Positions 27,418-61,383 of a DNA stretch of 64,000 nt are shown one piece after another. The DNA is taken from positions 62,001 to 126,000 of the IMG/VR virus record IMGVR_UViG_3300011113_000640. One strand, written 5' to 3'. Numbering within the stretch: the stretch's first letter is position 1; every line of letters starts with the position of its first letter. The notes beneath the pieces are model-generated. The model worked only from the letters and a program-made list of their open reading frames with translations. It was not told the origin of the DNA and did not search any database. The position numbers and the translations under genes were made by a program.

Positions 27418-27639
27418 TCAATAGAGTTTTTTTGGTAGTTGTTGATCACGCAGTTTTTTGCGCCAGCGTGCAGCGGCACCACCTTTTTTGCGTTTTCTTT
27501 TGGTAGTGGGTTTTTCGTAGGTTTCGCGACCTCGCAGTTCCTCCAAGAGGCCTTGTTCTTGGATCTTTTTCTTGAACTTGCGCAGAGCACGTTCCACATT
27601 GCCGTCTCGGACGACCACGCTTCTGCGATACTCTTTCAC
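27418..27639 (-). CDS. rpsU: Ribosomal protein bS21
   Basis: [12 protein letters not shown]...[15 protein letters not shown]...AARWRKK. Confidence 0.9.
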
Positions 27640-28835
27640 GAATTTTCCTGTAACAGTGTCATGGGTGTATTTACCTGGGTTTTATTGATTGTGACCTGTA
27701 ATATATTTTGTCGACGGTACCGGGGCAGATCAAACATGTGCGGCAATAACACCCGCTCCAGTTCGCTGTGTAATCCGCGGGCACCTGTGCCGGTTCTCAG
27801 TGTGCGTTCCACTATGAGATCCAGGCTTTCGGGATCAAATTGTAGATTTACCTGATCTTGATCAAACAACCATTGGTATTGACCCACAAAATTGTTTTTG
27901 ATTTCTGTCAACACACTGATCAATTGTGCCCGGGTCAGGGCATGTAGGTTTACATAGTTGCTGAATCTACCCACAAATTCGGGTATCATTCCATACCGCA
28001 CCAGGTCTTCTGGAGTAATGGGTTCTTGTCGGGTATCATCCGCCGATGAGATTTGTGCAGCAAATCCCATGGCTGTGCCTTGCACACGATTTTGTATGAT
28101 ACGGTCCATGCCCACAAACGCACCGCCGGCTATAAACAATATATTTGAAGTGTCAATCTCTACAGTTTCTGTAGTGTTGCTTTTTCTTGTTCCTTGCACA
28201 GGCACCTTGCATCGAGTGCCTTCGACCAATTTCAGCAAGGCCTGTTGCACACCTTCGCCGCTGACATCTCGACTGACCGTTGCACTTTCGCTTTTACGAG
28301 CTATCTTGTCAATTTCGTCCAGGAACACTATGCCGCGCTGACAGCGTTCTACATCGCCATCGGTGGCCATGTATAATCTTGTGATCATGCTTTCTACGTC
28401 ATCGCCTACATAGCCTGCTTCGGTCAAACAGGTGGCATCGGCTATGACAAACGGCACATCAAGATATTCGGCTACGGTGCGGGCCATCAAGGTTTTGCCT
28501 GTGCCAGTAGGACCGATCATGAGTATGTTGGCCTTGGCTATGCGTCGGTCGGCCTGACCGATACGTTTGTAATGATTGGCTATGGCTACGCTGAGCACAA
28601 TCTTGGCTGAATCCTGCCCTACCACGTGCTGATCAAGGTAATCTCTTATGTCTTTGGGATCAGGAACTGAAACTGTGGCGGGCTTTTTTTCTGGTGTGGC
28701 CTTGGTATCTTTGAGAAGCCCGCCACACAGATCCACACACTCGTTGCAGATGGCTACCTTGTGACTGACTATGAGTTTGCCCACACGATCTTTGTGTTTG
28801 TCACAGAAACTGCAATGTTCTATGGCCGGGCTCAC
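27636..28835 (-). CDS. clpX: ATP-dependent Clp protease ATPase subunit ClpX
   Basis: CSFC/ICNEC Zn domain, [38 protein letters not shown] loop, TGARGL; start uncertain (28835 GTG or 28889). Confidence 0.95.
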
Positions 28836-28836
28836 G

Positions 28837-30420
28837 TCAGGCCTGTCCGGTAGATCGTAATCTTTGTTCAATGCTGTCACGTTCAGCATCGCTCAACAAC
28901 TCAGGATCATATTCACCTGTGCTGATTTTTTCTATGAGATGATCTATGTAGTCGTCATTGTAGGCATGGGTATCACTTTGAGACTTGTCTACTTCAATCC
29001 AGGTTTTGCCATTGAACTTGTATAGCACACTGGGCAGTTGATCCACACGCAAGAACATGTCACTCTTGTTGGGGTTTGGTGGAAACGCGGTACCAAACCC
29101 GCGGACTTCACCCATTAATCCTTCAGGACGGTTGTCAGCTTCTAGGCCCAGTTGATCTTGATAGGCAGGATGATTCCAAGGAAAGTCTTCTACCTGTCCT
29201 GTTTGATGCATGCGGCGCCAATGTTTGATTGTTTCTCTTGGGTTGGCTTCTTTCCATTTTCTAATGGCTTCTTTTTCTCGAGGATCAATGCTGTCATCTA
29301 TGTCATCATCTGTTTTAATTTCATCAACAACTGTGTCTACCGGCTGGTTTAATGGAGCATGATCAGCTTCAGGATCTCGGTTAACGATTTTTTTGGCACG
29401 TGTCCACATGCTGTCTAGGCCAGCCAACACTGTCTGTTTAACAGTCTTTGCGGATTTAGCCGGGTCTTGTTCATCGGGCACATCAATTTCCGGGCCGGTC
29501 TGCGTCCATTCGTCTGTGCCCGAACGTATACCTTCAAACTCTCGAGGGAATGGCCATGGCACAGGTTTTTCCTTTTGTTGTTGATCCCAAAATCTGGCAC
29601 GCTCACGAGCTCGATCAAACCAAGATTGGACTTCTGGATCCTTATCGTTGACTTGCGTTTGATTTTCGCGCTCCCATTCAAAGGTCTTGGTGGCGGCCAA
29701 CAACAGGGTCAGGGCCAAGGGATCAAACACTATGACTATGAGTATGATTACCCAACGCACGGCCTTTTCTAACAGATTGGCATCGGGATTGTCACCATAT
29801 ATGAGTGCGGCAATGTATTTGATAGGACCTACTTCGGCTTCAATCTGCCGAGCTTGGCTGGCTATGGGTGCTCGTTGTTCTTGTAGTTTGGTAATCTCGC
29901 TCTGTGCCCGAGAAATGTCGTTCTGTAGATTGCCACGTTCACGGGCCTGACTACGGCGCAGGTTGGCAGCTTTGTCTGCCCCTTGCTCGCTAATGCTACG
30001 ACTCATGGTCTGATCCACGGCTTCATCCATTTGGCGCAGGGCCTTTCTGGCTGCTTCTATGTTGTCACGCTGTGTCCGGATCTTGTCATCGTAGATCTGC
30101 ACCTGGGCCTGTATGTCGCCCGACGGTACAGCCTGATCCAGGTGTGCCTTGGAAAGGAAGCCAAACACGCCCATGCTGGTCAAGACCATGAGTATGGCCA
30201 CAGCGGCACTGAGATATATCTTGTACTGCATTTCTGCACGGTGCCAATACTTGTGCAACCAGAGAGTTGATACCACCTTGCCTACTTCAAGACTGCTACC
30301 AAGAATAACAATGGGCCAGAAGGCCGCGGCAAATATGGCTGTGAGACCAAGTATGCTGTAATAGGCTGCACTCACTGATATGATCAGTGCAGTTGCGAGA
30401 GTTAGTATGCCAAACCACAT
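28837..30420 (-). CDS. Membrane protein with coiled-coil and acidic C-terminal region
   Basis: Three N-terminal TM segments, heptad region, EVGPIKYIA...VFDPLA TM. Confidence 0.7.
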   Translation of the reverse strand: MWFGILTLATALIISVSAAYYSILGLTAIFAAAFWPIVILGSSLEVGKVVSTLWLHKYWHRAEMQYKIYLSAAVAILMVLTSMGVFGFLSKAHLDQAVPSGDIQAQVQIYDDKIRTQRDNIEAARKALRQMDEAVDQTMSRSISEQGADKAANLRRSQARERGNLQNDISRAQSEITKLQEQRAPIASQARQIEAEVGPIKYIAALIYGDNPDANLLEKAVRWVIILIVIVFDPLALTLLLAATKTFEWERENQTQVNDKDPEVQSWFDRARERARFWDQQQKEKPVPWPFPREFEGIRSGTDEWTQTGPEIDVPDEQDPAKSAKTVKQTVLAGLDSMWTRAKKIVNRDPEADHAPLNQPVDTVVDEIKTDDDIDDSIDPREKEAIRKWKEANPRETIKHWRRMHQTGQVEDFPWNHPAYQDQLGLEADNRPEGLMGEVRGFGTAFPPNPNKSDMFLRVDQLPSVLYKFNGKTWIEVDKSQSDTHAYNDDYIDHLIEKISTGEYDPELLSDAERDSIEQRLRSTGQA

Positions 30421-34261: not shown

Positions 34262-35626
34262 TTACAGTTTTTCTCCTTGTTCAAATCCACGGAAGCGGAC
34301 AAAGCGGGGGAACCTTAGGCTATAGGTTCCATCTTGATTTTGGGTGACAGCGTCTGCCGCAACCTCAACCACTCGGCCAAGTAGGTCATTTCGGGAATGC
34401 CAATATTCATCACGATCAGCATCGGAAAGGCCACTGCCCACATTAACACGAATATTACGATCATTATCATTTCCTTCGCATATTATAGCACCCAAACGCC
34501 CTTGATTGCGACCTGTGCCTTCTTCAAATCCTACAATATTTAAGTCCACGGTCATCACAGGTTTCCATTTCATCCAGAAACTCGACCGTTTGCACTCGTA
34601 GGGTGCACCTACGTCTTTGATCATGACGCCTTCAAAGCCTTGGGCCACAGCATCCTCGGCAAATCTGCGCATGACATCTTGTCCTTCTGCGGTGCCGAGA
34701 TCCACATCCATACCAGGCATGATTCGGAGATTTGTTTCGGCTTCGATCTCTTGTCGGTTGATCTCCAACATCAAAGTGCGTTTATGTTGTTGGGCATTCC
34801 AAAATCCACGCTCAAAGTCTGCCAACGGAATCACATCAAAAATATAGTAGTTCATGTCCTTGGTCTTGACATTGTCTTTTCGTTGCGCCTGTTTCATCAA
34901 GGCCTGGAAACTTTCGCCCACGATCTCACCATCCAGCACAAACGGACCTTTGGTCTCAAGACTGATGCGATGTTTGATTCGGTTCAGTTGTTCTTGGATA
35001 TCTGGAAAGTTTTCAAATATCTTACCGTTGCGACTGTACAAGGTCACACGGTTCTTGGTGCATAACGCCAGCACACGCACACCATCCAGCTTGCACTCTA
35101 TACGTTTGATGCCCTTCATCTTGTTGGCGTGATCATTGCTGTCTGTGGCCAATTGGCAAGTGAACACAGGAATCCTCCACTCGGTCTTGCCCAGGATCTT
35201 GTTGAGTGTTTTTTCACTGATACCACAGCGCAGGTCTTTGATGATGACTCTGCGGCACAGGCCATTCCACTCTTCGCTGTCAAACTGCTCACTCATGGCC
35301 AGGATGGCATCTCTAGCATCATGTCCAGTGACACTACGAGTCCGCAAACTTTCTAACAGTCCCCAGAATGCCGGCCAAGGGTTAGGCCTGCCTGTCAGCC
35401 CTTCGGTCTCTGGCACTTGACGCACACCAAACACATGGAAGGGATTATAGGCTTCATAGCAGTTGAACAAGAAACATTGAGCATTGGCACTGCCCAGCTT
35501 GGCAGCCATGAGTGCTTTTTCAATTACTTTTTCTTTGTGTATTCTGCTGTCACTGCTTTCGAGATCGCGGATCCAGTCTGCGGCCAATTTTAATCCTTGG
35601 AATTTGACATCTTGCATGACTATCAT
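34262..35626 (-). CDS. ATP-dependent DNA ligase
   Basis: KLDGVR, SRNGK, LDGEI, EGVMIK, WMKWK, VGSG, SLRFPRF. Confidence 0.95.
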   Translation of the reverse strand: MIVMQDVKFQGLKLAADWIRDLESSDSRIHKEKVIEKALMAAKLGSANAQCFLFNCYEAYNPFHVFGVRQVPETEGLTGRPNPWPAFWGLLESLRTRSVTGHDARDAILAMSEQFDSEEWNGLCRRVIIKDLRCGISEKTLNKILGKTEWRIPVFTCQLATDSNDHANKMKGIKRIECKLDGVRVLALCTKNRVTLYSRNGKIFENFPDIQEQLNRIKHRISLETKGPFVLDGEIVGESFQALMKQAQRKDNVKTKDMNYYIFDVIPLADFERGFWNAQQHKRTLMLEINRQEIEAETNLRIMPGMDVDLGTAEGQDVMRRFAEDAVAQGFEGVMIKDVGAPYECKRSSFWMKWKPVMTVDLNIVGFEEGTGRNQGRLGAIICEGNDNDRNIRVNVGSGLSDADRDEYWHSRNDLLGRVVEVAADAVTQNQDGTYSLRFPRFVRFRGFEQGEKL

Positions 35627-43925: not shown

Positions 43926-46253
43926 TTATAGTTTGCATGCTAGACAATCTTCCTCTAAGAGGTCGCTGTCGGGTTCTTGAGTGTGCAAGACCTGTGGTGC
44001 TTCGTCTTGACCTTTGGATCCTTGTTTGTTGATCAGACTGTAGTAGAATGTTTTTAAACCCCAACGATGTGCTTGCATGAGGTTGGTGGCGATCAAGGTT
44101 GTAGGCACCTTGCGATCCGCAAAGTGCGCAGGGTTATAGAATGTGTTGGTTGAGATGCTTTGATCCACATAGGCAGCAATCACAGCTGCGGTCTTCAAGT
44201 AATTTGCACAGTCTCGTTGTTCCCACATGAGTTGATATCTGTTCTTCAACTTGTTGTACTCTGGAGCCACCTGGATCAAACTTCCTGCTTTGGATTCTTT
44301 GACAGTGATCAAGCTCATAGGCATTTCAATACCATTGGTTGAGTTGATCACAACCGATGACGACTCAACCGGAGCCACTGCCATGAGTGTGGCATTGCGC
44401 ACACCATGGATCTTCATCTTTTCACGCAGTGATTCCCAATCAAGTTCTGGTTTGAAGTTGGCCAGTTCGTTGACAGCCTTGGCGCGAAGCTCCCATGGAA
44501 ACACACCTTGTCCGTAGCGTGTTAATCCGCTGTGACTGCATGGTCCACGTTCTTTGGCCAATTCAACTGTGGCTTCTGTCAAATAGTAGGCTTGATGTTC
44601 CATCCACGACTTGACTTCTTGCAAGGCATCTTTTTCACCATACAGCAAGCCACGTTTTGCGTGCCAGTATGCTAGATTAGTGATGCCAATGCCCAAGGGT
44701 TGTATCTCTTGGTTTGACAGCATGCTCTGGATACTCAAATAGTCTTGATAATCAAGTATGTTACATAGACTGCGCTGTAAGATACGGCAGGCTCTGCGCA
44801 TGTCTTCGGGATTACGGAACGCACCCCAGTTGATGCTCCCCAATGTGCATAGTGCGATACGTCCGGCATCGTCATCGAGCCGCTTGAATGGCTTGGTGGG
44901 CAACAAAATTTCACAGCAAAGGTTGCTCTGATAGATGGCATGATACTCAGGATCAAATGGACCTTGGTTGACCACGTTGTCAATGTACACCAGATAGATG
45001 CGTCCGGTGTCAGTGCGCTCTTTGAGGATGCCGCCTTTGAACACATCCTCGGCACTCATGATTTTCTTTCTTAGATCTTTTCTTTTTTCATACTTGACAT
45101 AGAGTTCTTCAAACCGCTCTGGATCTGTATAAAATGCTTCATACATGTCTGGCACTTGGTTAGGATCAAAGAACGTGATTTGTTCCTTGTTCTTAAAACG
45201 CCGCCAAAAGAACGATGATAATACCACTCCGTAATCCATGTGTCGGACTCGTGTTTCTTCAGTGCCTTGATTGTTCTTGAGCACAATGAGATCATCAAAC
45301 TGATAATGCCAGATAGGATAGAACACAGTAGCACTCGCATTACGGATACCTCCTTGTGAACAACTACGCAAATCACCAAACCATTTTTTCAGGAATGGTA
45401 TCATGCCAGTGTGCATGACTTCACCACCGCGAATGGCGGCACCCAAGGGACGCAGACGACCAACTTCCAGGCCAATACCTGCACGTTTGGCCGCATACTT
45501 GGCCATCATTTCGCCACTAGCAAATATAGAGTCCAAATCGTCGTCGGCGCGAATAAGTACACAACTCGAAAACTGTTTGGTGGGAGTACCCAGACCAGCC
45601 AGTACAGGTGTAGCCAGAGTAAAAAGGCCATCACTGGCACAATTATAATATTCTTTGATGTAACGCATCCTAGCAGTGTTGGGTTCTTCTCGATGGAACA
45701 CAGTAGCTGCTGCCACCATGTATCTAACTTGTGGGGTTTCATAGATCTCCTTGGTGGCACGATTGCGTACCAGATATTTTTCAATCAACTGTTCAATGGC
45801 CGCATATGAATACTGTTCGTCTTTTTCATGATCGATCATGTCGTTCATGCGATTCCAGTCTTCTTCGGTATACCACTCCAACAACTCTGCGGTATACAGA
45901 CCAGTGGCTACATTCTTCTTGACAATTTCGTACAGGTGGGGAGGTGTGTAACTGCCATACACATCCTTCCTCAACATGCTGAGTCGTTGTTTACCTGCCA
46001 CGAACTGATAGTTGGTGTGGCCCACGTCAGGATTGGCTTCTACATCAATCAAGTCCACAGTGGCACGCAAGGTAATACCATCAATCTCTTGTGTGGTAAT
46101 ACCATCATAAAAGTGCAACTGTGCTTTGATTTCTATCATGCTCTGACTTACGTCAGCAATGCCCTGGCAGACCTTGGCAACCTGTGCCTGCCACTTGTCA
46201 ATCTGTAGTGGCTCTTTTCGTCCGCTTCTTTTTTCTACCGTAATCTGCGTCAT
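43926..46253 (-). CDS. nrdA: Ribonucleotide reductase class Ia alpha subunit with ATP cone
   Basis: QFSSC, SCSQGGIR, SNLCCEI, APVESSS, KTFYY, C-terminal CLAC. Confidence 0.97.
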   Translation of the reverse strand: MTQITVEKRSGRKEPLQIDKWQAQVAKVCQGIADVSQSMIEIKAQLHFYDGITTQEIDGITLRATVDLIDVEANPDVGHTNYQFVAGKQRLSMLRKDVYGSYTPPHLYEIVKKNVATGLYTAELLEWYTEEDWNRMNDMIDHEKDEQYSYAAIEQLIEKYLVRNRATKEIYETPQVRYMVAAATVFHREEPNTARMRYIKEYYNCASDGLFTLATPVLAGLGTPTKQFSSCVLIRADDDLDSIFASGEMMAKYAAKRAGIGLEVGRLRPLGAAIRGGEVMHTGMIPFLKKWFGDLRSCSQGGIRNASATVFYPIWHYQFDDLIVLKNNQGTEETRVRHMDYGVVLSSFFWRRFKNKEQITFFDPNQVPDMYEAFYTDPERFEELYVKYEKRKDLRKKIMSAEDVFKGGILKERTDTGRIYLVYIDNVVNQGPFDPEYHAIYQSNLCCEILLPTKPFKRLDDDAGRIALCTLGSINWGAFRNPEDMRRACRILQRSLCNILDYQDYLSIQSMLSNQEIQPLGIGITNLAYWHAKRGLLYGEKDALQEVKSWMEHQAYYLTEATVELAKERGPCSHSGLTRYGQGVFPWELRAKAVNELANFKPELDWESLREKMKIHGVRNATLMAVAPVESSSVVINSTNGIEMPMSLITVKESKAGSLIQVAPEYNKLKNRYQLMWEQRDCANYLKTAAVIAAYVDQSISTNTFYNPAHFADRKVPTTLIATNLMQAHRWGLKTFYYSLINKQGSKGQDEAPQVLHTQEPDSDLLEEDCLACKL

Positions 46254-46282: not shown

Positions 46283-46699
46283 CTACTTTATGTGGTGTTG
46301 CTGGTATTGCCGTTTGATCGTTACTGCTTGGATGGTATTTAATATTGAATTAGTTTCCCAATTCAGTATATATTTTGATTGTTCCACCAGGACTAAATTA
46401 TGCCCAGTTTCAGTCAAAACCAGGCGTGCCGGCTGTAAATCTGGTCGTTCCAGCAAAGTTATAGTATACAGGATTCCTAAGCCTCTTGCAAGTTCACAGT
46501 AGATGTCATCACTCAAAAGTTGCCAAGGATCGGGCCAGGTTTTTTGGTCATCCCAGTGTAGATAGTAAGGTCGCCAAGGTGCTCGAAACCACCAAGCATT
46601 AATGTGTTCTAGTGCAGATTGAGCAGAGAGATTTTGGCAATGGACACGCAACTGATTCCAGCTTTCCAGCCGAGCGGCAAATGTAACAGGCCAGATCAA
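46283..46699 (-). CDS. Hypothetical protein (possible transglutaminase-like fold)
   Basis: WPDPWQLL...YCE; 138 aa, TTG start. Confidence 0.55.
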   Translation of the reverse strand: MIWPVTFAARLESWNQLRVHCQNLSAQSALEHINAWWFRAPWRPYYLHWDDQKTWPDPWQLLSDDIYCELARGLGILYTITLLERPDLQPARLVLTETGHNLVLVEQSKYILNWETNSILNTIQAVTIKRQYQQHHIK

Positions 46700-48303
46700 G
46701 CTAGATAAGTGACAGAGTAGTAAATGGTGCCATTGATGCCAGTGTCTGTGGTAGTGTAATCCAAAGATACATCAGACCCTGTTTGACTGACAGACAGTGT
46801 GGCGCCGGTACTGCCATTCTCTACATAGTCATCGTTGAAGGTTAGAACTGTTCCTGCACCCCCATCTGAAGCAATCAAGATAAAACCTGTGCGATAAAAA
46901 TTATCGCGTATGATGGTGTAATCAATTTTGAAACATTTATTAAACTCGGTGCTGAGCGTAACAACCGTGCCTGTGGAATCGTTGATCAAAGTTGCTTGGG
47001 AGCCGCTGAGTCTGGTATACTGTCCCATCTGCAGGCTTTCGCCATTGGTAGTGGCGATACTGAGAGTGGTAGTACCATTGCCGGGATTGGTCAAACTAAT
47101 ACGCGGATAAATTTCAGCCGAGGTGTCATTGCGTTCAAACATGTCACCTATGCTGACATTGTTGTTGCTTTCAATACTGATGTTGGAAGCAATTACTGTG
47201 TTGTTTGACCCAGTAAATTCATTTCCAACGTCATAGAATACATTGTTGGCACTGGCATTCAAAGCTGTGTTTAAATATTGTCCAAATATGATACCTTCGG
47301 CATAGATATTATCAAATACATTGCCTGTGATCCTGGAACCAGTTGGACCGCCATCAACTGTTGAGCCTGTGCCCAGCAAGATACCTTGATACAAAACATT
47401 TAAATAACTGTTGGTCACAGTCAATCCCTTGGTAGGATAGTCTGTGTACACAGCATTGACCAACCCAGAGAATGTGCAAGTGTCGAACACAATCTGTTGG
47501 CATATGAAACTGGCATCGCTGAGCAGGCTGACACCAATGCTGCCATTGGTGTCTGTTGTGAGATCTGTTGTGGTGCTGGCGCCTGTGATGCCTACGTTTT
47601 TGAATGACATGTTGATGGCGTCTTGTACTAAAAACACGCTGCCAGTGGGATCCAGATGTGTGAATCCCATGTTGGAGATGGTAATGTTCTGTGGGCCGGT
47701 GGCTCCTGCGTTGCCAATGTTGTTGCCAGTTTGTTGCAAGCTGTCAGCTGTGCGTGCCACATAATCCGCCACACCGTCGTCCATGGCGATTACGCTGTTG
47801 TCGCCACCTTCACCAAACAGTGTGGCATACGGCGGAATATTGATACTCGAGGTAATACGATACACGCCAGCTGGAAAATACAAGCTACGACGTATTTGTG
47901 GGTTGACTTCTCGGCAAAACAGCTGATACAGGGCGCGATTAATGGCCGCGGTGTCGTCAGTTGACCCATCGCCTACTGCTCCAAAATCCGTGACCGATGC
48001 ATACTGATCCAACCAACTCTGTAAACTCTGTGTCACAGGTGTGCCCAGAGTAGGTCCGGTCTGCACTGTGTAGCCTGCTGCTTGACCTTTATAGGTATAG
48101 GTGTTGGTAAAAGCCAGGATGTCGCTGAATTCTGTCAGTATTTCTGTGTTGCCTATGACCGGAGCACCATCTTGTATGGTGCCGTTGCCGATGAATAATC
48201 TGCGCGAATCAGTGCTCCACCCTAATTCAGCTCCAGCTAATTGAGGAAGATTTTCTTGTAATCCTTTGCGATTGGTAATCTGCGAAATCTGTACTATGGC
48301 CAC
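46696..48303 (-). CDS. Tailspike-like protein: Mtd-N-type head plus pectate-lyase-like beta-helix
   Basis: LPQLAGAELGWSTDSRRLFIGNG; SVTDFGAVGDGSTDDTAAI...YFPAGVY. Confidence 0.8.
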   Translation of the reverse strand: MAIVQISQITNRKGLQENLPQLAGAELGWSTDSRRLFIGNGTIQDGAPVIGNTEILTEFSDILAFTNTYTYKGQAAGYTVQTGPTLGTPVTQSLQSWLDQYASVTDFGAVGDGSTDDTAAINRALYQLFCREVNPQIRRSLYFPAGVYRITSSINIPPYATLFGEGGDNSVIAMDDGVADYVARTADSLQQTGNNIGNAGATGPQNITISNMGFTHLDPTGSVFLVQDAINMSFKNVGITGASTTTDLTTDTNGSIGVSLLSDASFICQQIVFDTCTFSGLVNAVYTDYPTKGLTVTNSYLNVLYQGILLGTGSTVDGGPTGSRITGNVFDNIYAEGIIFGQYLNTALNASANNVFYDVGNEFTGSNNTVIASNISIESNNNVSIGDMFERNDTSAEIYPRISLTNPGNGTTTLSIATTNGESLQMGQYTRLSGSQATLINDSTGTVVTLSTEFNKCFKIDYTIIRDNFYRTGFILIASDGGAGTVLTFNDDYVENGSTGATLSVSQTGSDVSLDYTTTDTGINGTIYYSVTYLA

Positions 48304-50378: not shown

Positions 50379-50765
50379 CTATGATTCGCCTAGATGTTTT
50401 CTCTTATAATCTTCAATAGCAGCCTTGATCGCGTCCTCAGCCAGGATGGAGCAATGGATCTTAACGGGCGGTAAGGCAAGTTCTTCTGCAATCTGTGAGT
50501 TCTTAATCTCTCCTGCCTGCTCCAACGTTTTGCCCTTGACCCACTCTGTGACAAGTGAGGAGCTCGCAATAGCTGAACCGCAACCGTAAGTTTTAAATTT
50601 CGCATCTTGGATGACACCATCTTGTACCCTTATTTGCAGTTTCATCACGTCGCCACAGGCCGGAGCACCAACCATGCCGGTACCTACATTGACATCGCCA
50701 GTATCCATCTTGCCCACGTTGCGTGGATTCTCATAGTGATCAATTACTTTTTCTGAATAGGCCAT
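50379..50765 (-). CDS. iscU: Fe-S cluster scaffold IscU
   Basis: MAYSEKVIDHYENPRNVG, APACGDVM, GCGSAIASSS, LPPVKIHCS. Confidence 0.97.
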   Translation of the reverse strand: MAYSEKVIDHYENPRNVGKMDTGDVNVGTGMVGAPACGDVMKLQIRVQDGVIQDAKFKTYGCGSAIASSSLVTEWVKGKTLEQAGEIKNSQIAEELALPPVKIHCSILAEDAIKAAIEDYKRKHLGES

Positions 50766-50820
50766 TTGACTCTCCTAGTAATATTATAACACTGTATGTA
50801 AGTATTTACAACCTTTTTGA

Positions 50821-51720
50821 TTAAACCGGTTCCAGGGTATATTGTTTTCGGGCTTCTTTTTTGCTGACAGCAAACAATCTGTTTTTGTAGTCTAAACTTT
50901 CTGGACAAAATTTACACATTTCTAATTGATCGTCAATGGTAGACAAAAAGTCCTGGCCTCGTTGTGCATATTCATATGGCGATAAGGGTTGGTAGGAATT
51001 TAAAATAGCTCTATCTTCGTCTGAGATATCAAATCGATGTTGATGGTCAAACTCTGGAAATAGTGCTGCCGGTCCACATTTATACAGCCGGCCTTTGATC
51101 ATGTGATAATTTTTATGTCTGCGGAATCCGCAACTGTTGTGGGCCACTTCGGGTCTGCTGTTGTGAAGTGTAAATTTACCTGATTGGTCACGTTTGATTG
51201 CACTATCGTAAAAATCATATTGTATCCACAACGGGATGGCAACTTTGTTTTCATCAATCCAGGCAATATGAGCACCAAACTCGTTGCGAGGATCATCTTT
51301 TTCTACTTTTGTAATTTTACCTCGAAGAAACTTGTGAACTTCAGCTTCAAATTCATCAATGGTATTGGGATTATGCCAACTGATGCCCATCCAATTGCCA
51401 TTGACCTGTAGTGCTTCGTACAGTCCCTTTACGTTGTTTAAACGTGTGCCATTTGAAAGTATCTGCACATTGGTTCCAAATATGCGATTGAGTCCATGGA
51501 TCCAATCCATGATGTCAGGATTCAACAAGGGTTCACCACCCAGGAGCACCATGTGATCAATGTCCACATACTCGGCCCATTTTTCATAGTCAGCTTCGTA
51601 ATCTGCCCAGCGTTGCCAGCCAGCGAAATTGTAGTTGTTGAAACGGTTGCAACCTTCACAGGTAAGGTTACACACATTGGTTATGTAAAACTCAATTTTT
51701 GAAAATTTGTGTTTGATCAC
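50821..51720 (-). CDS. Radical SAM protein
   Basis: CNLTCEGC, GGEPLL, C-terminal Cys residues. Confidence 0.85.
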   Translation of the reverse strand: MIKHKFSKIEFYITNVCNLTCEGCNRFNNYNFAGWQRWADYEADYEKWAEYVDIDHMVLLGGEPLLNPDIMDWIHGLNRIFGTNVQILSNGTRLNNVKGLYEALQVNGNWMGISWHNPNTIDEFEAEVHKFLRGKITKVEKDDPRNEFGAHIAWIDENKVAIPLWIQYDFYDSAIKRDQSGKFTLHNSRPEVAHNSCGFRRHKNYHMIKGRLYKCGPAALFPEFDHQHRFDISDEDRAILNSYQPLSPYEYAQRGQDFLSTIDDQLEMCKFCPESLDYKNRLFAVSKKEARKQYTLEPV

Positions 51721-52058
51721 TGACGACGTTTCATTGCTGCTTTGGCGTTGGAATCTACCACGGCACGAGCTTGATCCACACTCATGCCTGTGGTGGCCTC
51801 AGTGTCACCTTTGAAGCGAACCACGCCTGAGTTGGGTTCCAACGGTTCTAGCAAATTTTTCAATGGATCTTGTGTGATCAAATCGGCTAGTGTCTCTGGT
51901 GTAAGCTCGACACCCACGCTTTTGGCTGCTTGGATATAAGCATCCTGGCTGATCTGCTTGCGAGCAGATTCGTCCTTGGCTCGATCAACAAGAAACTTGG
52001 TTATGGCTACTAACTTGTCGGCGTTGGGACGGGTTTCAGCAAACTCACGAATTAACAT
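51717..52058 (-). CDS. Hypothetical late protein
   Basis: 113 aa, MLIRE N-terminus. Confidence 0.65.
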   Translation of the reverse strand: MLIREFAETRPNADKLVAITKFLVDRAKDESARKQISQDAYIQAAKSVGVELTPETLADLITQDPLKNLLEPLEPNSGVVRFKGDTEATTGMSVDQARAVVDSNAKAAMKRRQ

Positions 52059-52927
52059 TATCTACGGGCACGACCCAATGATGCGGCTGGTGTTTCTGCA
52101 CCGGGCTCTTCAATGTCAATGTCAGTGACATCAATTTCTTCTTCACCGGGCGCTGGTAACTCGGCTGGCATTTCGGCACCAAGGTCTGCGCCCATGTCGG
52201 CGCCTGGTACTGTAGGAGCTTGACCTGTGACCACACCCAAGGCAGCTTCCAACTGTGTCTTGGCGCCTTGTAAGTTTTGCAACAGGCCTGCTAGAGCAGC
52301 TGTGGCATCGGTGTTGAACTGCATGGCCTGATCCGTGCCAACTTCGTTCTTGATCTGATCTACCAGGGCTGGTAGGTCTTTGAACTGCATGGCCGAGATC
52401 TGTTCGCTCATTTTCTGTACTTGATCAACCATATCTTGGCTGGCCAAGACCACTTGAGCTTGCTGAACTTCACTGGCTTCTTTGAGTCGTTGACGAAGAC
52501 TTCTACGACCTTCCATGGTAGGCACGTTCATGCCACGTTGTAAGTCAGCTTTTTGTTTGTTGAGATCAGTGACTTGCTTTTCAATGTCACGGATTTGATC
52601 TTGTTTGTTGCGTTTGTCCTGGGCCACCTGAGCACTCTGCAGAGCCGCTTGTTTGCGTGGATCCACCGGCGCTGTGGCAGGTGCCATGGCCTGTGTGGCC
52701 AGAGCCTGTTCCATGACTACCAATTTCAAATAAGCAGGATTTTGTTCACTGTGATGGAATTCCGGAGTCCGACGATGTTCAGCTATCATGCCACGCACAC
52801 GCTTGAGCATGCCGCGGGCTTGCGATGGGGTTATCTGGTCAAATTTGACGGTATTGCCAAAGTAGCTTTCAAATACTTTAGCGGCTTGTTTTGTTGGGTT
52901 GGCCGCGGCCAATTCGTTGAGTTTCAT
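52058..52927 (-). CDS. Putative head/scaffold-like protein
   Basis: MKLNEL start; coiled-coil; acidic tail ending LGRARR. Confidence 0.6.
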   Translation of the reverse strand: MKLNELAAANPTKQAAKVFESYFGNTVKFDQITPSQARGMLKRVRGMIAEHRRTPEFHHSEQNPAYLKLVVMEQALATQAMAPATAPVDPRKQAALQSAQVAQDKRNKQDQIRDIEKQVTDLNKQKADLQRGMNVPTMEGRRSLRQRLKEASEVQQAQVVLASQDMVDQVQKMSEQISAMQFKDLPALVDQIKNEVGTDQAMQFNTDATAALAGLLQNLQGAKTQLEAALGVVTGQAPTVPGADMGADLGAEMPAELPAPGEEEIDVTDIDIEEPGAETPAASLGRARR

Positions 52928-53375
52928 CTTCAAATCCTCGTTGTTGAACATATTTAGCCCACTTGACACATTTGGTCAGTTGATTTTCCAAGTGTTTTTT
53001 GTGGATGATCTTGCTTTCCAGCTTGGCCAAAATAGTTTCGCGCAACACAGGATCACGGCTACGATCACCAATGCCGGCTCTAGTGGCTATGTCATGGGTC
53101 AAATAAGCCAATTTGCGGTCGGTTTCTAATAGTTCTCGGGCAGTGTTGTAGGCACGATTTTTGTCGGCTATGCACCAGCTGAGTGCTGAACGAGTAGAGC
53201 TGAATGTGCCCACTTCGGTGGCCGAGCAAAACACTGTATAACCTGTTTTCGCCGGTGAGATCCTGTAGCGATCAAACACTTGATAAATTCCATCGTCATT
53301 TTGGTAAATTACATTGGGCATGAGATCGCGAAATTCCTGGCGGAACATGCGCTCAACATCTTGTTCTCGAATCAT
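52878..53375 (-). CDS. Hypothetical protein
   Basis: MIREQD start. Confidence 0.6.
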   Translation of the reverse strand: MIREQDVERMFRQEFRDLMPNVIYQNDDGIYQVFDRYRISPAKTGYTVFCSATEVGTFSSTRSALSWCIADKNRAYNTARELLETDRKLAYLTHDIATRAGIGDRSRDPVLRETILAKLESKIIHKKHLENQLTKCVKWAKYVQQRGFEDETQRIGRGQPNKTSR

Positions 53376-54873: not shown

Positions 54874-56751
54874 TTAGGTGACCAGATTTGGGTTGTTTAA
54901 GATGCGGTTTCCGGCACTGAACCCAAAGCGATTTACCAACTTGGCACGTCCGGCATCGGTGGCTAGGACCCAGCCTTCTTGTCCGGGTTGTTGGCGATCC
55001 AACTGTGCCAGCATGTCCATCTTGATTTCATGCAACAGCAAGAACGCTGTGAATGCGGCTGTGATGCCCGACATGTTGCTTCTGGGGCTCTGCAGGTATT
55101 CCACTATGTTGTTGTATTTTCTTGGAGTTACGTTTTTCTGCAACCAAGCTCCAAAGTCTGGCAATAAATTTTCATAGTCAGTGGTGATCCTGCTGTTGAT
55201 GTAGCGTTTGCACAAGGCAGGCAGGTCACTGAGTTGTGCACCGCGAAGTTCAGCAGGATTGAACAGACCGTTGATGTCAGAACCGTGAGAGCTGACCACT
55301 GCACGCAGTTGATCTACGAGCTTTTTGTTGGGTGTGACATTCTTGATGTCTTTGACCGTGGGCTCAATTATGAGCAAGCCCGGCACTGGATCTAGATTTG
55401 CACTGCGTATGGGTTCTGCTGCGGCATCGGCAGTTTTGTATCGGGTATGCACGGCTATGCCCACTTCACTGTTGCCAATGGCCTGGCCCAATTTACTGGC
55501 GGCCGGAATGCGATATTCCACAAAGTTGGGTTTGAATTCATAGTTGCCCGACACTTCAGGTGGAGTTTCAGTGTACAGCAGATCGCCTTGCAAGTATCCG
55601 CGGAAGTTTTCAGGCGTGGCAGCTTCCAGCATGGGCCATAGTTTAGCATAAATGCCTATCAACTCACCACGTTCCCCGCCACGCTGATTCATGATACCAG
55701 CCAACTGCTGTATACTGGTAGCACGGCCCTCGTAACCTTTGGCACCAAATCCGCTCTTGTCTGTGAGAACAAAACGACCTTGTTCGTCGCGGCCCCAGAT
55801 AATAGCGGGTTTGCCATCCCATTTGACTGTGGTGGTTCGGCGTGTGTCTTCGGCGGCTGCACGTATGATGGCCATGGCTTCTTCTATACCACGTGTGCCG
55901 CGATCAAACACCAGATCTTCTATGTGTGGAATCCTTGCTTCGGCTTCCATCAAAGTGGATTCGATCAAGGGCGTCATGCCTTGATTTACAATCCTGTCTC
56001 TCAGTTTGGCCAAGAAATGCACATCAGTTACAGGTTTGAACAATTCTGCACTTTCCAAGAATGGCAGGCCTTCGCGCTTCATGTGTTCGCGGAAGTCGGC
56101 CAGTTTAGATTCACGTTGAGCATCGGTGCTGAGTGCTTGTAGTATGCTTTCCACCGAAGCTAGGTCTTGCCGGGTGGCTGTTTTATTGAGCAGTAGTTTG
56201 GCCACAGCATCTGGATCATCGGTGATAATTTTGTCTGTGGTACGATCTGCTATGCCAGAGATTTGATTGAGTTTGTAGCCCATGCTCTTGGCTATGCTGT
56301 TCATGAGCACATTGCGTTCTTTGCCTTTGTATTTGGAATCCGCAGGCATGGCACCCAACACAAACTTTGACCATGGCACGTTTTTAAGAAACATAAAGTC
56401 AGTTTGCACGTAGCCCTGTTCTGGTCTACCAGTGATAGGTGTAAGGAAATGCACTGCTGTGCCGCTTTTGCGAACCCACTCATCGGGTTTGAATCCATGA
56501 CTGGCGGCCCATTGTCGGAGTCTTGTTTCCAACTGTTCTTTGGTTACCCGGGTAGAATCTACGGCGATATCTAAATCACCACTGGTGTCTTTGATACCAG
56601 TGCTACCAAGTGTGTTGTTTTGTAGATCCAGCCCAGGCAGCAGTTCTTCCAACCAGGCCAAGGTAGGTTTGACATCAGTCTGGTTGATGCGTTGTGTCAG
56701 ACTACGGCCGTCGGCATCTTTGAATACGTTGCCACCTTCAAAAATGTTCAT
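54874..56751 (-). CDS. Fusion protein: Pol-beta-type nucleotidyltransferase-like domain plus KWDG (DUF6267/ligase-like) domain
   Basis: LGSTG...SGDLDIAVD...VQTD; HIED...TVKWDG...QGDLL...EGWV...KLVNR. Confidence 0.6.
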   Translation of the reverse strand: MNIFEGGNVFKDADGRSLTQRINQTDVKPTLAWLEELLPGLDLQNNTLGSTGIKDTSGDLDIAVDSTRVTKEQLETRLRQWAASHGFKPDEWVRKSGTAVHFLTPITGRPEQGYVQTDFMFLKNVPWSKFVLGAMPADSKYKGKERNVLMNSIAKSMGYKLNQISGIADRTTDKIITDDPDAVAKLLLNKTATRQDLASVESILQALSTDAQRESKLADFREHMKREGLPFLESAELFKPVTDVHFLAKLRDRIVNQGMTPLIESTLMEAEARIPHIEDLVFDRGTRGIEEAMAIIRAAAEDTRRTTTVKWDGKPAIIWGRDEQGRFVLTDKSGFGAKGYEGRATSIQQLAGIMNQRGGERGELIGIYAKLWPMLEAATPENFRGYLQGDLLYTETPPEVSGNYEFKPNFVEYRIPAASKLGQAIGNSEVGIAVHTRYKTADAAAEPIRSANLDPVPGLLIIEPTVKDIKNVTPNKKLVDQLRAVVSSHGSDINGLFNPAELRGAQLSDLPALCKRYINSRITTDYENLLPDFGAWLQKNVTPRKYNNIVEYLQSPRSNMSGITAAFTAFLLLHEIKMDMLAQLDRQQPGQEGWVLATDAGRAKLVNRFGFSAGNRILNNPNLVT

Positions 56752-57755
56752 CGCACTTGCACTCCCATTCTTTGCAACATAGCGTCAACTTCTGCATTGC
56801 CAGTGGATCGAGCTTGATTGGATTTAAATTTGTTGGTCACTGATTTGATAGGGTTTAGATTAACTCCGGCCTGTGTCAGAGCTTGCATAACAGCACCTTG
56901 CTGACTTTGAGCTTGACTGGCAGCAGATAGACTGCTTTGAGGTTCTTCATTTTTCAATGACTGACTGCGTGCTTGTACCCCTGCTATGGCCACTTGTAAG
57001 TACGCACGAATAGCTTCGTCGGCCTGTGGTGTGCCACGTGCTTTGACCACATCATTTAATTTTTTTTCCAATACGGCGGCAATGTTTGGCACGTGTTTTC
57101 TAACGTCGTTCATGGTGATAGCATTGTAACGGCTGTCTCTACTGGCCAGTTGCTGATCTGTCCAGTCTTGGAATGCCTTCTTATAATCCGCCGCATTCAT
57201 TTGTACTGCTTCCTGTAGTTTGCCCTGTTTTTTAAGTTGCGCCAAAATCTGTGCATCTTTGGGATTGTTGGGATCCAAAGGCTTTTGACGTTGTCCTGCA
57301 AAACTCACAGTAGTGCCAGGTTTGCCATAAGTCGGTCGTGCCTTGGAAGCGGTCGACGAGGCAGTTGATTGTGTAGCTGGTTGTGGTGAGGTTTGTTGAG
57401 CAACAGTTGTTACAGCCTGCGACGATGGTTGTGCCAGACTTGCCTGGCGTTGTTGTTGTTGAGTTTGGGCCATCTGCTTGCTCCAACCCTGCATGATCGA
57501 ATTTATATACTGGCCCACGGCTGGGTCCTTTTGCAAGGTCTGGTATTTGTCTGCCCAGTTGGATGAGGGCAAGGCTGACCCTCCTGGACCATAGCCTTGT
57601 TTGCTCAAAGCCGCTGCGCTTTTGGCCGCACTTTTGGCCGCACTGCCTGGGCTTTGTGGTAGGTCTGGACCACCTGCGGCTGAAACCAATCCACGCCCAA
57701 TGTCGCCTAGCAAGCCTTCTTGAACCGGACGTTGAGTTACTTCATAGATTTGCAT
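56748..57755 (-). CDS. Q/A-rich hypothetical (probably virion-internal) protein
   Basis: MQIYE...VQEG N-terminus; low-complexity linkers. Confidence 0.6.
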   Translation of the reverse strand: MQIYEVTQRPVQEGLLGDIGRGLVSAAGGPDLPQSPGSAAKSAAKSAAALSKQGYGPGGSALPSSNWADKYQTLQKDPAVGQYINSIMQGWSKQMAQTQQQQRQASLAQPSSQAVTTVAQQTSPQPATQSTASSTASKARPTYGKPGTTVSFAGQRQKPLDPNNPKDAQILAQLKKQGKLQEAVQMNAADYKKAFQDWTDQQLASRDSRYNAITMNDVRKHVPNIAAVLEKKLNDVVKARGTPQADEAIRAYLQVAIAGVQARSQSLKNEEPQSSLSAASQAQSQQGAVMQALTQAGVNLNPIKSVTNKFKSNQARSTGNAEVDAMLQRMGVQVR

Positions 57756-57990
57756 CAGTGCGCCTTACTGTGCGAGTAAATTTGCCAGGGTCACGCTGAT
57801 TGATAGCATTGAGCAGTTTGCGTTTTAAATTTTCAGCCTGTTCTTCAGGATAGGTTTCATCAATCTGCTCCATCAAACGTATGGCACTGGCAATCACGTT
57901 GCTGGCACGGTTTTCTATGACATGGCGCTGATCGCGCTCGATGTACATGGCATCTAATTCTTCTAGTAGACTTCTTGTTTTTTTCTGCAT
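57742..57990 (-). CDS. Hypothetical conserved phage protein
   Basis: 82 aa, TRSLLEEL...LLNAI...D..KF. Confidence 0.7.
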   Translation of the reverse strand: MQKKTRSLLEELDAMYIERDQRHVIENRASNVIASAIRLMEQIDETYPEEQAENLKRKLLNAINQRDPGKFTRTVRRTDANL

Positions 57991-58014: not shown

Positions 58015-59025
58015 TTATTGGTTTTGGCCACAGTTGTCATCACAAATAACCAAACGTCCTTGTTCATAGTTTGGTATTTTCCATGCTTTTTCAACAGATT
58101 TAAACCATTCTACACATTCTTGCAAAGGGTGTTCTAGGGCATTGTTTTTAACTATCAGTGGAATCAACTGTGCATTGGCCGCTTGATGGTATTGTCCGGC
58201 ACCATATGTCTTAGGATAAAAACCTGTGTAGCAACATGGGCTAACATCACCGGTGGCTGAAATATAAATGGATTTTAAATTCTTGGTTTCACAGCTAATA
58301 GATGTTGCAGGTACTTGATCAGCTGTGATATCCTCTAGCAAAACATGGTCTGTTTTTTTCTTGTGAAACAAAATCTCAAAATTACGTTCACCTGTGTAGT
58401 TGCCCATGACATGTACCAAATTGCCATGCTGATCAAACACCGGCGCAGTATCACGTCCGTCATTTTTTAATTTAAACTCTTTAAATCCTAGGTCTTGGCT
58501 TATTTTTTTGCAGGTATCAATTTGATGTCTATTGTGATCAAATGGAATCATACTCCAAATAGCATATCCGCCTGCACTGATAAATTCTTTGGCATTCTTG
58601 ATAACCGTGGACCATTGCGTGTTTTGTCGGTAAAGGTGATGTGTGTCCTTGAGCCCATCTAAACAAAATTGCACGGTAGCTGGTGTACGTGCCAGTCTAG
58701 TCCAAAAATCTTTGTTTCTAGCACCACCATTGGTACTGATAGTTACTGCAAGTTCTGGATTGTGAGAGAAAAAATAGTCTACTATTGCCGGCCCTTCGGA
58801 ATTCATAACGATGTCACCAAAATTGCCGTTGATACGAATACTGGTCAACTGTTGTAAAAACTCAGGGCGAAAGATATGTCGGGCTTGTGTTAAACTGAGA
58901 TTGGTTTCAGGGTACCCGCCGTTGTAGGGATACCCCCAGAATGTTCTAGGACACCAAGAACAACTGGCGTTGCAAAGGCTAGAGATTTCCAAATGAACAT
59001 CTCTTATGTCTTGATACGCAATCAC
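58015..59025 (-). CDS. Radical SAM protein with SPASM/twitch-like domain
   Basis: CNASCSWC, NGNFGD, STNGG, GDVSPCC, C-terminal CxxxC. Confidence 0.85.
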   Translation of the reverse strand: MIAYQDIRDVHLEISSLCNASCSWCPRTFWGYPYNGGYPETNLSLTQARHIFRPEFLQQLTSIRINGNFGDIVMNSEGPAIVDYFFSHNPELAVTISTNGGARNKDFWTRLARTPATVQFCLDGLKDTHHLYRQNTQWSTVIKNAKEFISAGGYAIWSMIPFDHNRHQIDTCKKISQDLGFKEFKLKNDGRDTAPVFDQHGNLVHVMGNYTGERNFEILFHKKKTDHVLLEDITADQVPATSISCETKNLKSIYISATGDVSPCCYTGFYPKTYGAGQYHQAANAQLIPLIVKNNALEHPLQECVEWFKSVEKAWKIPNYEQGRLVICDDNCGQNQ

Positions 59026-60419
59026 GTGGTTTTGATTTTGCCTAATAGTTGTTTGAGTTTGGCACTCTGCACATCTGCTGTGATTTTGCCAGACTCTACA
59101 ATTTCTTCTTCTACAGGTGTGGTCATACGGCTTTGTGTTCTAATACTGCTTAAAATATCAGGTTTCTTGAACGCATTGACTGGTCCAGCGTCTTCGCCTG
59201 GATCGGTGATACGCATGGTTTCAATGTTGTAATCCAAGTCAATCTTTTGTCCTACACCTGTACTGCTACGGCTCTTCATACACTGTATCTGATACTTGCC
59301 ACGTTCACGCATGGCTCTTGATGTAAAGATACCAAACACGTTGTCTGCTGTGTTGATCTTTGAGATACCACCCGATATATGGCTGTGATCGAATTCAATT
59401 TCCTCCACAGCACTTCTGTTCAACTGACTTGCTGTCACAAACAACACATTGAGTTCTTTGGCCAAGTTACGCAATTCTTCACTCACATATTTGTCTTTGA
59501 CAAACAAGTCATTTGGTGATACTTTGGCACTCACGGGCATCAGCAAGTCCAAGTAATCACACATGACGAAATCCACTTTCAATCCTGTTTGTACTTGGAC
59601 TTCTTTGATGTAGCTTCGTATATCATTGATGTTGCTCTGTGCCGGCAAGGCCTTGATACGATACTGTCCGGCTTTCTTGCTCACAAGTTTGACCTTGAGT
59701 TCGGTCTGATCAATGTCCTTGCGGATCTCCTTGGTGCTCATGCCTGCCAACATGGCATCGGTTCTCAACGCACAAAGTTCTTCACTAAGTTCTAAACTGA
59801 TATACACACCAGACAAGCCAGCCTGCAACCAGCTCAATGCTATGTTCATCATGACTAAGGATTTACCACTACCCGATCCACCTGCAAATATGTTCAATTC
59901 GCCGCGGCTGAATCCGCCATACAGGATCTTGTCCATCTGTGGCCATCCTGTGCTCACTTGTCCACCGCTGTTAAAGTATTTGTTGATCCTTGCTTTGGGA
60001 TCAGACCAGTAGTCTGTGCCCATGTCTTTGGTCAGACTGATCTGTACCGCATCCTTGATCAGTTTCTCCACAGGATCGTACTCGCCTTTTTCCAGCAAGT
60101 CTGCACTCTTTAGGATTGCACGTTCCAGTTCCTGGCGTCTAGTAAAGCCTTCAAACTCGTCCATGAACCACTCAAAGTGTCCGTCGTTCAAATCTGGAAT
60201 ATGATTCAGTTGCACACCTGTGCTGGCTGCGATCTGTTCCGTGGTGGGCAAGGTCTTATGATCGTCACTGTGTTTGGCAATAAACTCGGCCGCAGGTCGC
60301 AAACTTCTATCAAAGTTTTCGGGATTGTAGATGTTCTGCACACGCACATAACTTTCTGCGTCTTGCAACATCATTTCTAAGAATAGGCGTTGGACTTCAA
60401 GTCCGTAATCTTTTAACAA
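59022..60419 (-). CDS. Replicative DNA helicase (T4 gp41/DnaB-like)
   Basis: GGSGSGKS, SLELSE, DYLDLL, TASQLNR, KSR. Confidence 0.92.
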   Translation of the reverse strand: MLKDYGLEVQRLFLEMMLQDAESYVRVQNIYNPENFDRSLRPAAEFIAKHSDDHKTLPTTEQIAASTGVQLNHIPDLNDGHFEWFMDEFEGFTRRQELERAILKSADLLEKGEYDPVEKLIKDAVQISLTKDMGTDYWSDPKARINKYFNSGGQVSTGWPQMDKILYGGFSRGELNIFAGGSGSGKSLVMMNIALSWLQAGLSGVYISLELSEELCALRTDAMLAGMSTKEIRKDIDQTELKVKLVSKKAGQYRIKALPAQSNINDIRSYIKEVQVQTGLKVDFVMCDYLDLLMPVSAKVSPNDLFVKDKYVSEELRNLAKELNVLFVTASQLNRSAVEEIEFDHSHISGGISKINTADNVFGIFTSRAMRERGKYQIQCMKSRSSTGVGQKIDLDYNIETMRITDPGEDAGPVNAFKKPDILSSIRTQSRMTTPVEEEIVESGKITADVQSAKLKQLLGKIKTT

Positions 60420-61383
60420 GTTGTTTCTTCCTTAGTTCTATTTTAATTTTACTGGTTTCCTTGGCCTGCATGATAGTTATCAAAGTTGCTACCTTTCCCC
60501 AACGAATCACAGCATCGTTGACATCTTTTACATCCGCAGGCCATGTAGGCATGCTTACACTCCATCCAAGTTCCACAGCACGATCCACCAACTTCATACC
60601 TGCTTCGTCTTGATCTGGAACCACTATGACTTCACGATCTAAACTGCGAATTAGACGTACCTGGGAGTCATTGATCTCAGCATGCAACACAGCCAAGCCG
60701 CCGATGCTGAGTGCGTCAAACACACCTTCGACCACTAGAGCATAACGCCAGTCTGCCCCTTGCAGATCTGTGCCAAACACATAACCTGGTTGTGTGTCGT
60801 GGATATACTTGGGCTGACGATTGTCCAGCATCCTACTGCTGTAGCCTACCACGCGATTGTCATAGGTAAATGGAACTATGACCTGTGGACGTGTCCAATG
60901 CACACTGTCATTTTCCAACACAGTCATCACAGGATAGTCTTCGGGTATTGCACGGCCACGCAAGTAATCCCAGTGCGGACTATGTTTTGTGGTGACCAGT
61001 TCTGCAGCAGGTGGCAGGTCACGTTCTTCAAACTCTATGCCTTGCAAGGTGTTGCTTAACCTTTGACGATCTGTCAACAGACCTTCCATGCTACGATGGC
61101 GCAGGCTTTCAAGATTGATGCGTTCTATTTCTTCCGTGGGCACACCCAACCATGACATGAACTTGCGTGCTTTGAAACTGAGATTACGACCTATGATAAA
61201 GCTGGCAGTGTAACCACAATTGAAACAATGATAACTCCACCCTGCGTCAGAAGTTTTGATGCCGCCTCGGTTGCGACGGTCTCGACTTTCTCCCATGTGC
61301 TCACAACAGGGTGCATTAAAACTGATCCACCCCGAAGCACTGGGCTTGCGTCGTGCGGGTAAATAAGAAATCACATCAATCAT
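60397..61383 (-). CDS. DNA primase (T4 gp61-like)
   Basis: Zn-binding APCC/HCFNC; TOPRIM VEGVFDA, PDQDEAG, KDVND. Confidence 0.88.
   Translation of the reverse strand: MIDVISYLPARRKPSASGWISFNAPCCEHMGESRDRRNRGGIKTSDAGWSYHCFNCGYTASFIIGRNLSFKARKFMSWLGVPTEEIERINLESLRHRSMEGLLTDRQRLSNTLQGIEFEERDLPPAAELVTTKHSPHWDYLRGRAIPEDYPVMTVLENDSVHWTRPQVIVPFTYDNRVVGYSSRMLDNRQPKYIHDTQPGYVFGTDLQGADWRYALVVEGVFDALSIGGLAVLHAEINDSQVRLIRSLDREVIVVPDQDEAGMKLVDRAVELGWSVSMPTWPADVKDVNDAVIRWGKVATLITIMQAKETSKIKIELRKKQLVKRLRT

Follow-up and report, generated by a model that had tools for sequence, protein, structure and literature searches.

A predicted polymerase and ligase-like fusion protein in a large aquatic phage: a minimal family-X-type domain joined to the OB-less family DUF6267

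The base-excision repair pair of African swine fever virus (ASFV), made up of Pol X and a DNA ligase, and the bacterial polymerase-ligase fusion LigD are the described systems closest to the subject of this report, P0001, a protein encoded on a 64,000-nucleotide stretch (hereafter the window) of an aquatic phage genome of ~320 kb. The window spans bases 62001-126000 of IMG/VR virus record IMGVR_UViG_3300011113_000640 (320,541 bp, estimated 93% complete). ASFV Pol X consists of palm and thumb without fingers and 8-kDa domains, as does the N-terminal domain of P0001; however, the ASFV polymerase and ligase are separate proteins, whereas the two parts of P0001 are fused or, in relatives, encoded by overlapping genes. 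LigD is a fusion, but its polymerase is an archaeo-eukaryotic primase rather than a Pol X. The ligase part of P0001 also differs from the ASFV and LigD ligases in carrying a helical insert and neither an OB nor an N-terminal DNA-binding domain, and similarity of P0001 to the ASFV enzymes or LigD is undetectable at the sequence level. A second set of comparators is formed by the nick-sealing RNA ligases of the Rnl2/Rnl5 type (T4 Rnl2, Trypanosoma brucei REL1, Naegleria NgrRnl), from which P0001 is set apart by the lack of a Pfam RNA_ligase match and by a helical module placed inside the nucleotidyltransferase domain rather than appended to it. Pairings of the type RlaP-Rnl or terminal uridylyltransferase (TUTase)-REL differ in turn, in that P0001 has no RlaP match and its partner nucleotidyltransferase carries a Pol X thumb, not the central domain of poly(A) polymerases and TUTases. 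The C-terminal half of P0001 is instead a bona fide member (E 1.7e-34) of DUF6267 (PF19782; PHROG 455; T4-GC 71 of cyanomyoviruses), annotated in Pfam as a family of unknown function, whose cyanophage members are stand-alone proteins of ~320-415 aa, in contrast to the fused member described here.

The architecture of P0001 is a new variant: a minimal Pol X is fused to a divergent ligase-like family that lacks the OB domain and carries a helical insert, and each part falls within a known enzyme superfamily. Pfam matches only its C-terminal half (DUF6267, aa 275-615, 120 bits against a 27-bit cut-off), PHROGs assigns it to family 455, function unknown, and a literature search for DUF6267 found no paper mentioning the family. 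Metagenomes contain several thousand close full-length relatives, the longest of their contigs reaching 345 kb. The original prediction, made from the DNA letters alone, had placed a Pol-beta-superfamily nucleotidyltransferase in the N-terminal half and a KxDG ligase-like nucleotidyltransferase in the C-terminal half, and both assignments are borne out below. Every motif it named is present in the 625-aa open reading frame (ORF): G49-S50, D59-L-D61, D118 (in VQTDF), KWDG at 310-313, QGDLL at 388-392, EGWV at 592-595 and KLVNR at 604-608. Because these motifs are conserved across relatives, they are not chance matches; one detail is corrected, as the spacer of the motif given as GS-x7-DLD has eight residues, not seven. 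A fold search of each domain, put forward with that prediction as a check, returned family-X polymerases for the N-terminal domain and mostly ligases for the C-terminal domain.

By its modeled fold, the N-terminal domain is a predicted minimal family-X-type polymerase composed of palm and thumb only. Among 32 relatives of this domain (alignment A1; 45-74% identity, including stand-alone proteins of ~250 aa), G49, D59, D61, and D118 are invariant, S50 is kept in at least 90%, and a GGNVFK motif near the N terminus is also conserved. The AlphaFold2 model (predicted local distance difference test score, pLDDT, 90.8) has a palm that superposes on those of Pol beta, Pol lambda, and TdT, followed by a thumb subdomain, and the top 50 Foldseek matches in the PDB are all family-X enzymes (Pol beta, Pol lambda, ttPolX; E about 2e-4). 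With family-X polymerases alone in these top 50, the domain is assigned specifically to a minimal Pol X and not just to the Pol-beta superfamily; its likeness to RNA-specific nucleotidyltransferases is confined to the palm. A Pfam DNA_pol_B_thumb match at aa 147-176 falls below threshold (E 0.017), and the domain shows no RlaP (PF10127) or CCA-adding enzyme family match and no head-plus-neck architecture. A language-model look-up gave consistent leads only, to viral 'nucleotidyltransferase' and 'DNA polymerase beta palm' clusters, and sequence searches of both domains of P0001 against solved structures, with single sequences or profiles, returned nothing meaningful. The GS..SGD(L)D pattern of P0001 is one that we take to resemble the GS..SGD(M)D segment of Pol beta.

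The model of the C-terminal domain (AlphaFold2, pLDDT 94.9) likewise points to DUF6267 as a previously unrecognised ligase-like domain that belongs to the covalent nucleotidyltransferase superfamily. A profile search of 1.84 billion representatives retrieved 1,761 clusters (50% identity) at E <= 1e-3, and in a set of 123 diverse relatives (26-56% identity) D279, K310, D312, G313, G320, Y413, G422, H435, E592, G593, R608, and F611 are invariant, with H276, E278, D390, and K604 conserved in at least 96%. These residues lie, in order, on the model strands where ligase motifs I, III, IV, and V are found, the spacing within the motif IV-V hairpin EGWV...AKLVNR is the usual one, and H276-x-E278-D279 sits on the N-terminal helix of the domain. 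Foldseek gave no match for the C-terminal domain at E <= 1e-3, but its top 50 are nearly all ATP-dependent DNA or RNA ligases, and ranks 1-25 of a VIA search are exclusively ligases, with scores of 6.8 for T. brucei REL1, 6.2 for a Prochlorococcus DNA ligase, 6.1 for Trl1 and T4 Rnl2, 5.8 for LigIV, 5.7 for T4 Rnl1, and 5.3 for the Chlorella virus ligase, against 4.2 for capping enzymes. The helical insert has no counterpart in the matched ligase ranges and is peculiar to DUF6267; judged from the model, it is a possible nucleic-acid-binding module. No known ligase family is matched by Pfam, the A3 profile found nothing among PDB sequences, and hhalign detected no similarity between the DUF6267 profile and the DNA ligase of the phage itself. 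With an alignment of 15 sequences from that DNA-ligase family as the target, the hhalign probability stayed below 1%, which is weak negative evidence because the alignment is shallow. In five relatives (P0471, P0490, P0142, P0143, P0170) mini-inteins (C...HN|S) interrupt motif I precisely, at KWDG|SPA; the intein-bearing proteins, all metagenomic, include both stand-alone and PolX-fused DUF6267 proteins.

The gene arrangements of relatives show the two domains to be coupled in evolution. Among 150 representatives the fusion in the order seen in P0001 is common, and five proteins (P0389, P0402, P0404, P0417, P0427) carry the domains in reverse. In a syntenic relative (locus L091) they are encoded separately: primase and helicase genes are followed by a Mom-like gene, one encoding 82 aa, and then by genes for a PolX-like protein (250 aa) and a DUF6267 protein (356 aa) that overlap each other by 4 bp. 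In the jumbo phage Atu_ph07 the synteny with helicase and primase is kept and a PolX-like gp065 (E 8e-29) adjoins gp066, a protein of 324 aa with KLDG near its N terminus and a weak Pfam RNA_ligase match (E 1e-3). The Pfam model finds no DUF6267 in Atu_ph07, and hhalign aligns DUF6267 with gp066 in the motif I region only (E 0.047). Directly downstream of gp065, five paralogous genes of ~250-360 aa stand in tandem (gp059-gp063; L085 7579-11756). Other partners occur in the 51 extra regions of DUF6267 relatives, where ParB_N and DUF2608 were each found once and no Walker-A or kinase P-loop was found; the phage's own CTP_transf_like genes were considered as partners and set aside, as they are distant from the P0001 gene and weakly related to the fused versions. 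The ESM-Atlas also contains a viral cluster of 65 members in which a Cu/Zn superoxide dismutase domain is fused to DUF6267.

Table 1. Location of P0001 and of its domains and motifs in the window.
Feature	Position	Strand	Basis or remark
Whole gene P0001	54874..56751	(-)	ORF, 625 aa
N-terminal domain, aa 1-262	55966..56751	(-)	family-X-polymerase-like palm + thumb (aa ~11-200), then helical tail
GSTGIKDTSGDLD: triphosphate-binding GS and first two predicted catalytic carboxylates, D59 and D61	56569..56607	(-)	conservation
D118, predicted third catalytic carboxylate (VQTDF strand)	56398..56400	(-)	invariant; on strand 114-122 of model
Inter-domain linker, aa 263-274 (IESTLMEAEARI)	55930..55965	(-)	LIE/LME at junction; split point in split-gene relatives
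C-terminal DUF6267 domain, aa 275-625	54877..55929	(-)	ligase-like nucleotidyltransferase fold without OB domain
Motif I KWDG, K310 predicted AMP-accepting lysine	55813..55824	(-)	invariant K310, D312, G313; intein insertion site in relatives
Motif III QGDLL (D390), on beta strand	55576..55590	(-)	D390 96%; strand 111-119 of domain model
Helical insert of ~110 aa, aa 476-587	54991..55326	(-)	helices 202-313 of domain model, between motif III/IIIa sheet and motif IV
Motif IV EGWV (E592, G593)	54967..54978	(-)	invariant
Motif V KLVNR (K604, R608)	54928..54942	(-)	K604 99%, R608 100%

The gene lies in a replication setting (Table 1). The start codon of P0001 shares bases with the stop codon of the preceding ORF 56748-57755 (ATGA). 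Just upstream on the same strand are three small ORFs, followed by genes for a DnaB-type helicase (59022-60419) and primase (60397-61383); the P0001 gene is two to three genes away from the helicase-primase pair. The position next to helicase-primase genes is conserved: it recurs in Atu_ph07 and among T4-like marine phages.

The reading we favor, to which we assign an even chance, is that P0001 acts in two steps, 'fill and seal', on broken duplexes of nucleic acid, most probably DNA; from the folds, motif conservation, domain coupling, and synteny described above we infer the catalytic activities, their order, and the DNA substrate. The N-terminal domain, with carboxylates D59, D61, and D118, would add the missing nucleotide or nucleotides to the 3'-OH at a short gap, and its Pol X thumb would imply a templated duplex substrate. 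The DUF6267 domain would then be adenylylated on K310 of KWDG, pass adenosine monophosphate (AMP) to the 5'-phosphate, and seal the nick, while the substrate would be held by the family-specific helical insert, probably in place of the OB or C-terminal domains that other ligases have. The position of the gene in a replication/repair module would suit base-excision-type repair or the maturation of lagging-strand gaps, in parallel with the canonical ATP-dependent DNA ligase of the phage.

Several observations weigh against the fill-and-seal proposal. At threshold, a Pfam/NCBIfam scan of the N-terminal domain, PolX models included, gave no match, and this domain of 262 aa is missing the fingers and the 8-kDa (deoxyribose-phosphate lyase/helix-hairpin-helix) domains. 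DNA ligases normally possess an OB domain and motif VI, both of which are absent from the model of P0001, with no DNA_ligase_OB match in Pfam; the chain ends ~17 residues past motif V and thus leaves no OB domain. The best structural matches of the C-terminal domain are RNA ligases, with DNA ligases within about 1 Z unit, and the phage already holds a canonical ATP-dependent DNA ligase. Among the 51 extra regions of DUF6267 relatives, 13 carry a HIGH-motif adenylyltransferase (PF01467, GxFxPxHxGH; weakly NMNAT/PPAT-like) and four an Acb1-like 2H phosphoesterase, partners more in keeping with RNA-end healing or NAD-linked chemistry than with DNA repair. Enzymatic activity of P0001 is, moreover, a prediction only.

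Much of this evidence bears on RNA repair as counter-defense, which the original prediction had also raised and which stays a live rival, though one we rate as rather unlikely. Here the Pol-beta-type domain would restore one or more lost nucleotides after cleavage and trimming of tRNA or other RNA by an anticodon nuclease or ribotoxin, and DUF6267 would be an RNA ligase. The leading C-domain matches (NgrRnl, TbREL1, Trl1, Rnl2) are RNA ligases in which, too, no OB domain follows the nucleotidyltransferase domain, relatives are fused to Acb1-like 2H phosphoesterases, DUF2608, and HIGH adenylyltransferases, a DNA ligase is already present, and the phage carries seven tRNAs and a tmRNA-like gene. 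Cooperation between nucleotidyltransferases and RNA ligases is, in addition, an established prediction for jumbo phages (PMC7824862), comparable to RlaP-Rnl or CCA-Rnl pairings. However, a Pol X thumb suits templated duplex substrates, the likeness to RNA-specific enzymes is limited to the palm, PF10127 and CCA-enzyme matches are lacking, and the gene sits in the replication module, away from the tRNA cluster. The genome also has no AAA_33 polynucleotide-kinase-type protein, no Acb1/2H protein, and no RNA-ligase match other than its DNA ligase that could heal 2',3'>P and 5'-OH ends. A further, improbable reading retains covalent nucleotidyl transfer by the C-terminal domain and dispenses with strand joining, making the domain capping-like, 5'-end-adenylylating, or NAD+-consuming with NMNAT-like partners. 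The missing OB domain and motif VI would agree with this, as would the recurrent fusion or proximity of HIGH adenylyltransferases (the 13 extra regions and a cyanophage neighbor gene) and the H-x-E-D motif on the N-terminal helix, where NAD+ ligases carry domain Ia, a parallel that we draw ourselves; yet a polymerase-like partner, found on either side of the domain and also in an overlapping gene, suits gap filling followed by sealing.

The original prediction had envisaged a packaged and injected anti-defense enzyme. Such an effector would be cut at linker LxE sites by the prohead protease and would make or destroy nucleotide signals, an account that we now regard as highly improbable. LxE motifs do separate the halves, LIE at 262-264 and LME at 267-269, and these two (L/I)xE motifs at the junction are kept in close relatives; but the motif is not enriched (8 observed in the whole protein against 6.3 +/- 2.3 in shuffles, P = 0.29), and the junction copies, while conserved, are unremarkable. 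Two small nearby genes match Atu_ph07 proteins annotated as virion structural, and Acb1-like and ParB_N domains, such as polyvalent proteins have, occur in a few remote DUF6267 proteins. On the other side, P0001 has no MuF, portal, or capsid-targeting feature, the genome has no Acb1 match, and the gene lies near the helicase-primase pair. The Atu_ph07 counterparts gp065 and gp066 are not annotated as virion structural despite a measured virion proteome, the Atu_ph07 study having reported 112 additional virion-associated proteins. Nucleotide signaling found no support either, the bilobed fold of CD-NTases being absent. The ORF at 57742-57990 (-) matches PHROG 11854 and Atu_ph07 gp068, annotated as virion structural, and the ORF at 52058-52969 (-; 303 aa) matches PHROG 14154, virion structural; virion genes are therefore interspersed with replication genes here.

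Other features of the genome complete the setting. The canonical ATP-dependent DNA ligase, with DNA_ligase_A_M and an OB domain (PHROG 114), lies at 34262-35626 (-), so the phage has two ligase-fold proteins. The ORF immediately upstream of P0001, at 56748-57755 (-), encodes a Q/S/A-rich, low-complexity protein of 335 aa with no family match and is absent from the split-gene relative L091. The product of ORF 58015-59025 (-) is radical-SAM/SPASM-like by weak Pfam matches; its slot in L091 (6203-7693) is occupied by a DUF7487-Mom fusion, a hint that the place beside the helicase is a variable slot for DNA modification. Elsewhere in the window are a ClpX-like AAA+ ATPase with a zinc finger (27636-28889, (-)), the large subunit of a class I ribonucleotide reductase (43926-46253, (-)), and a pectate-lyase-like protein with an Mtd_N domain, likely a fiber or spike (46696-48303, (-)). 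In the flanking region 50379-51720 (-), one ORF (50821-51720) is presumably radical-SAM-like, by its CxxxCxxC motif only, and another is, by its motif, putatively IscU-like. The 64-kb window contains no tRNA genes; ARAGORN places a cluster of seven, together with a permuted tmRNA-like gene (tag ANAANDEVFALAA), outside it at G000 270341-279075.

Beyond this phage, 467 phage records contain DUF6267, of which 453 are cyanomyoviruses; the gene order in T4-like marine phages is gp43, UvsX, gp41, then DUF6267. Some cyanophages are reported to be without gp30 (PMC2993671). A scan of six Kyanoviridae (P-TIM40, P-RSM6, HTVC008M, Melnitz-3, Syn1, S-SSM7) found no PF01068 or PF01653 ligase in any of them and no PF09414 match in P-TIM40 or P-RSM6, which makes DUF6267, to judge from these profile searches, the only ligase candidate in T4-like cyanophages. 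We count these ligase gaps, the 453 cyanomyovirus records, the position next to the helicase-primase genes, and the lack of AAA_33-type and separate RNA-ligase matches in the genome that encodes P0001 as context in favor of a DNA substrate. A hidden Markov model of the N-terminal domain found no PolX-like partner near DUF6267 in these six phages or in XaC1, which also has a canonical DNA ligase; the P-TIM40 gene upstream of DUF6267 (PTIM40_181) was considered as PolX-like and proved by BLAST not to be. A conserved DUF6267 neighbor in T4-like marine phages is a 'cytidyltransferase', a HIGH adenylyltransferase with weak NMNAT/PPAT likeness that adjoins DUF6267 or lies within two genes of it (L081 6192-7265; L132 6242-8032; L134 2164-2733). 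We tentatively propose that DUF6267 may be a novel clade of polynucleotide ligases that lacks the OB domain, and the missing phage-encoded DNA ligase of T4-like cyanophages and pelagiphages (Kyanoviridae), perhaps drawing AMP from NAD+ made by the NMNAT-like neighbor or fusion partner, and that in jumbo phages it may have been captured by a minimal Pol X as a single-chain gap-fill-and-seal enzyme.

Direct tests of the prediction are made possible by the intein in motif I and the recurrent fusions. If it is correct, the compact fusion of polymerase and ligase might serve as a reagent, and phages would be added to the few viruses with a Pol X-type enzyme. DNA sealing in T4-like marine phages without gp30 would be explained, and a chemistry would be assigned to a large uncharacterized family that extends over 1,761 clusters at 50% identity and 453 cyanomyovirus records.
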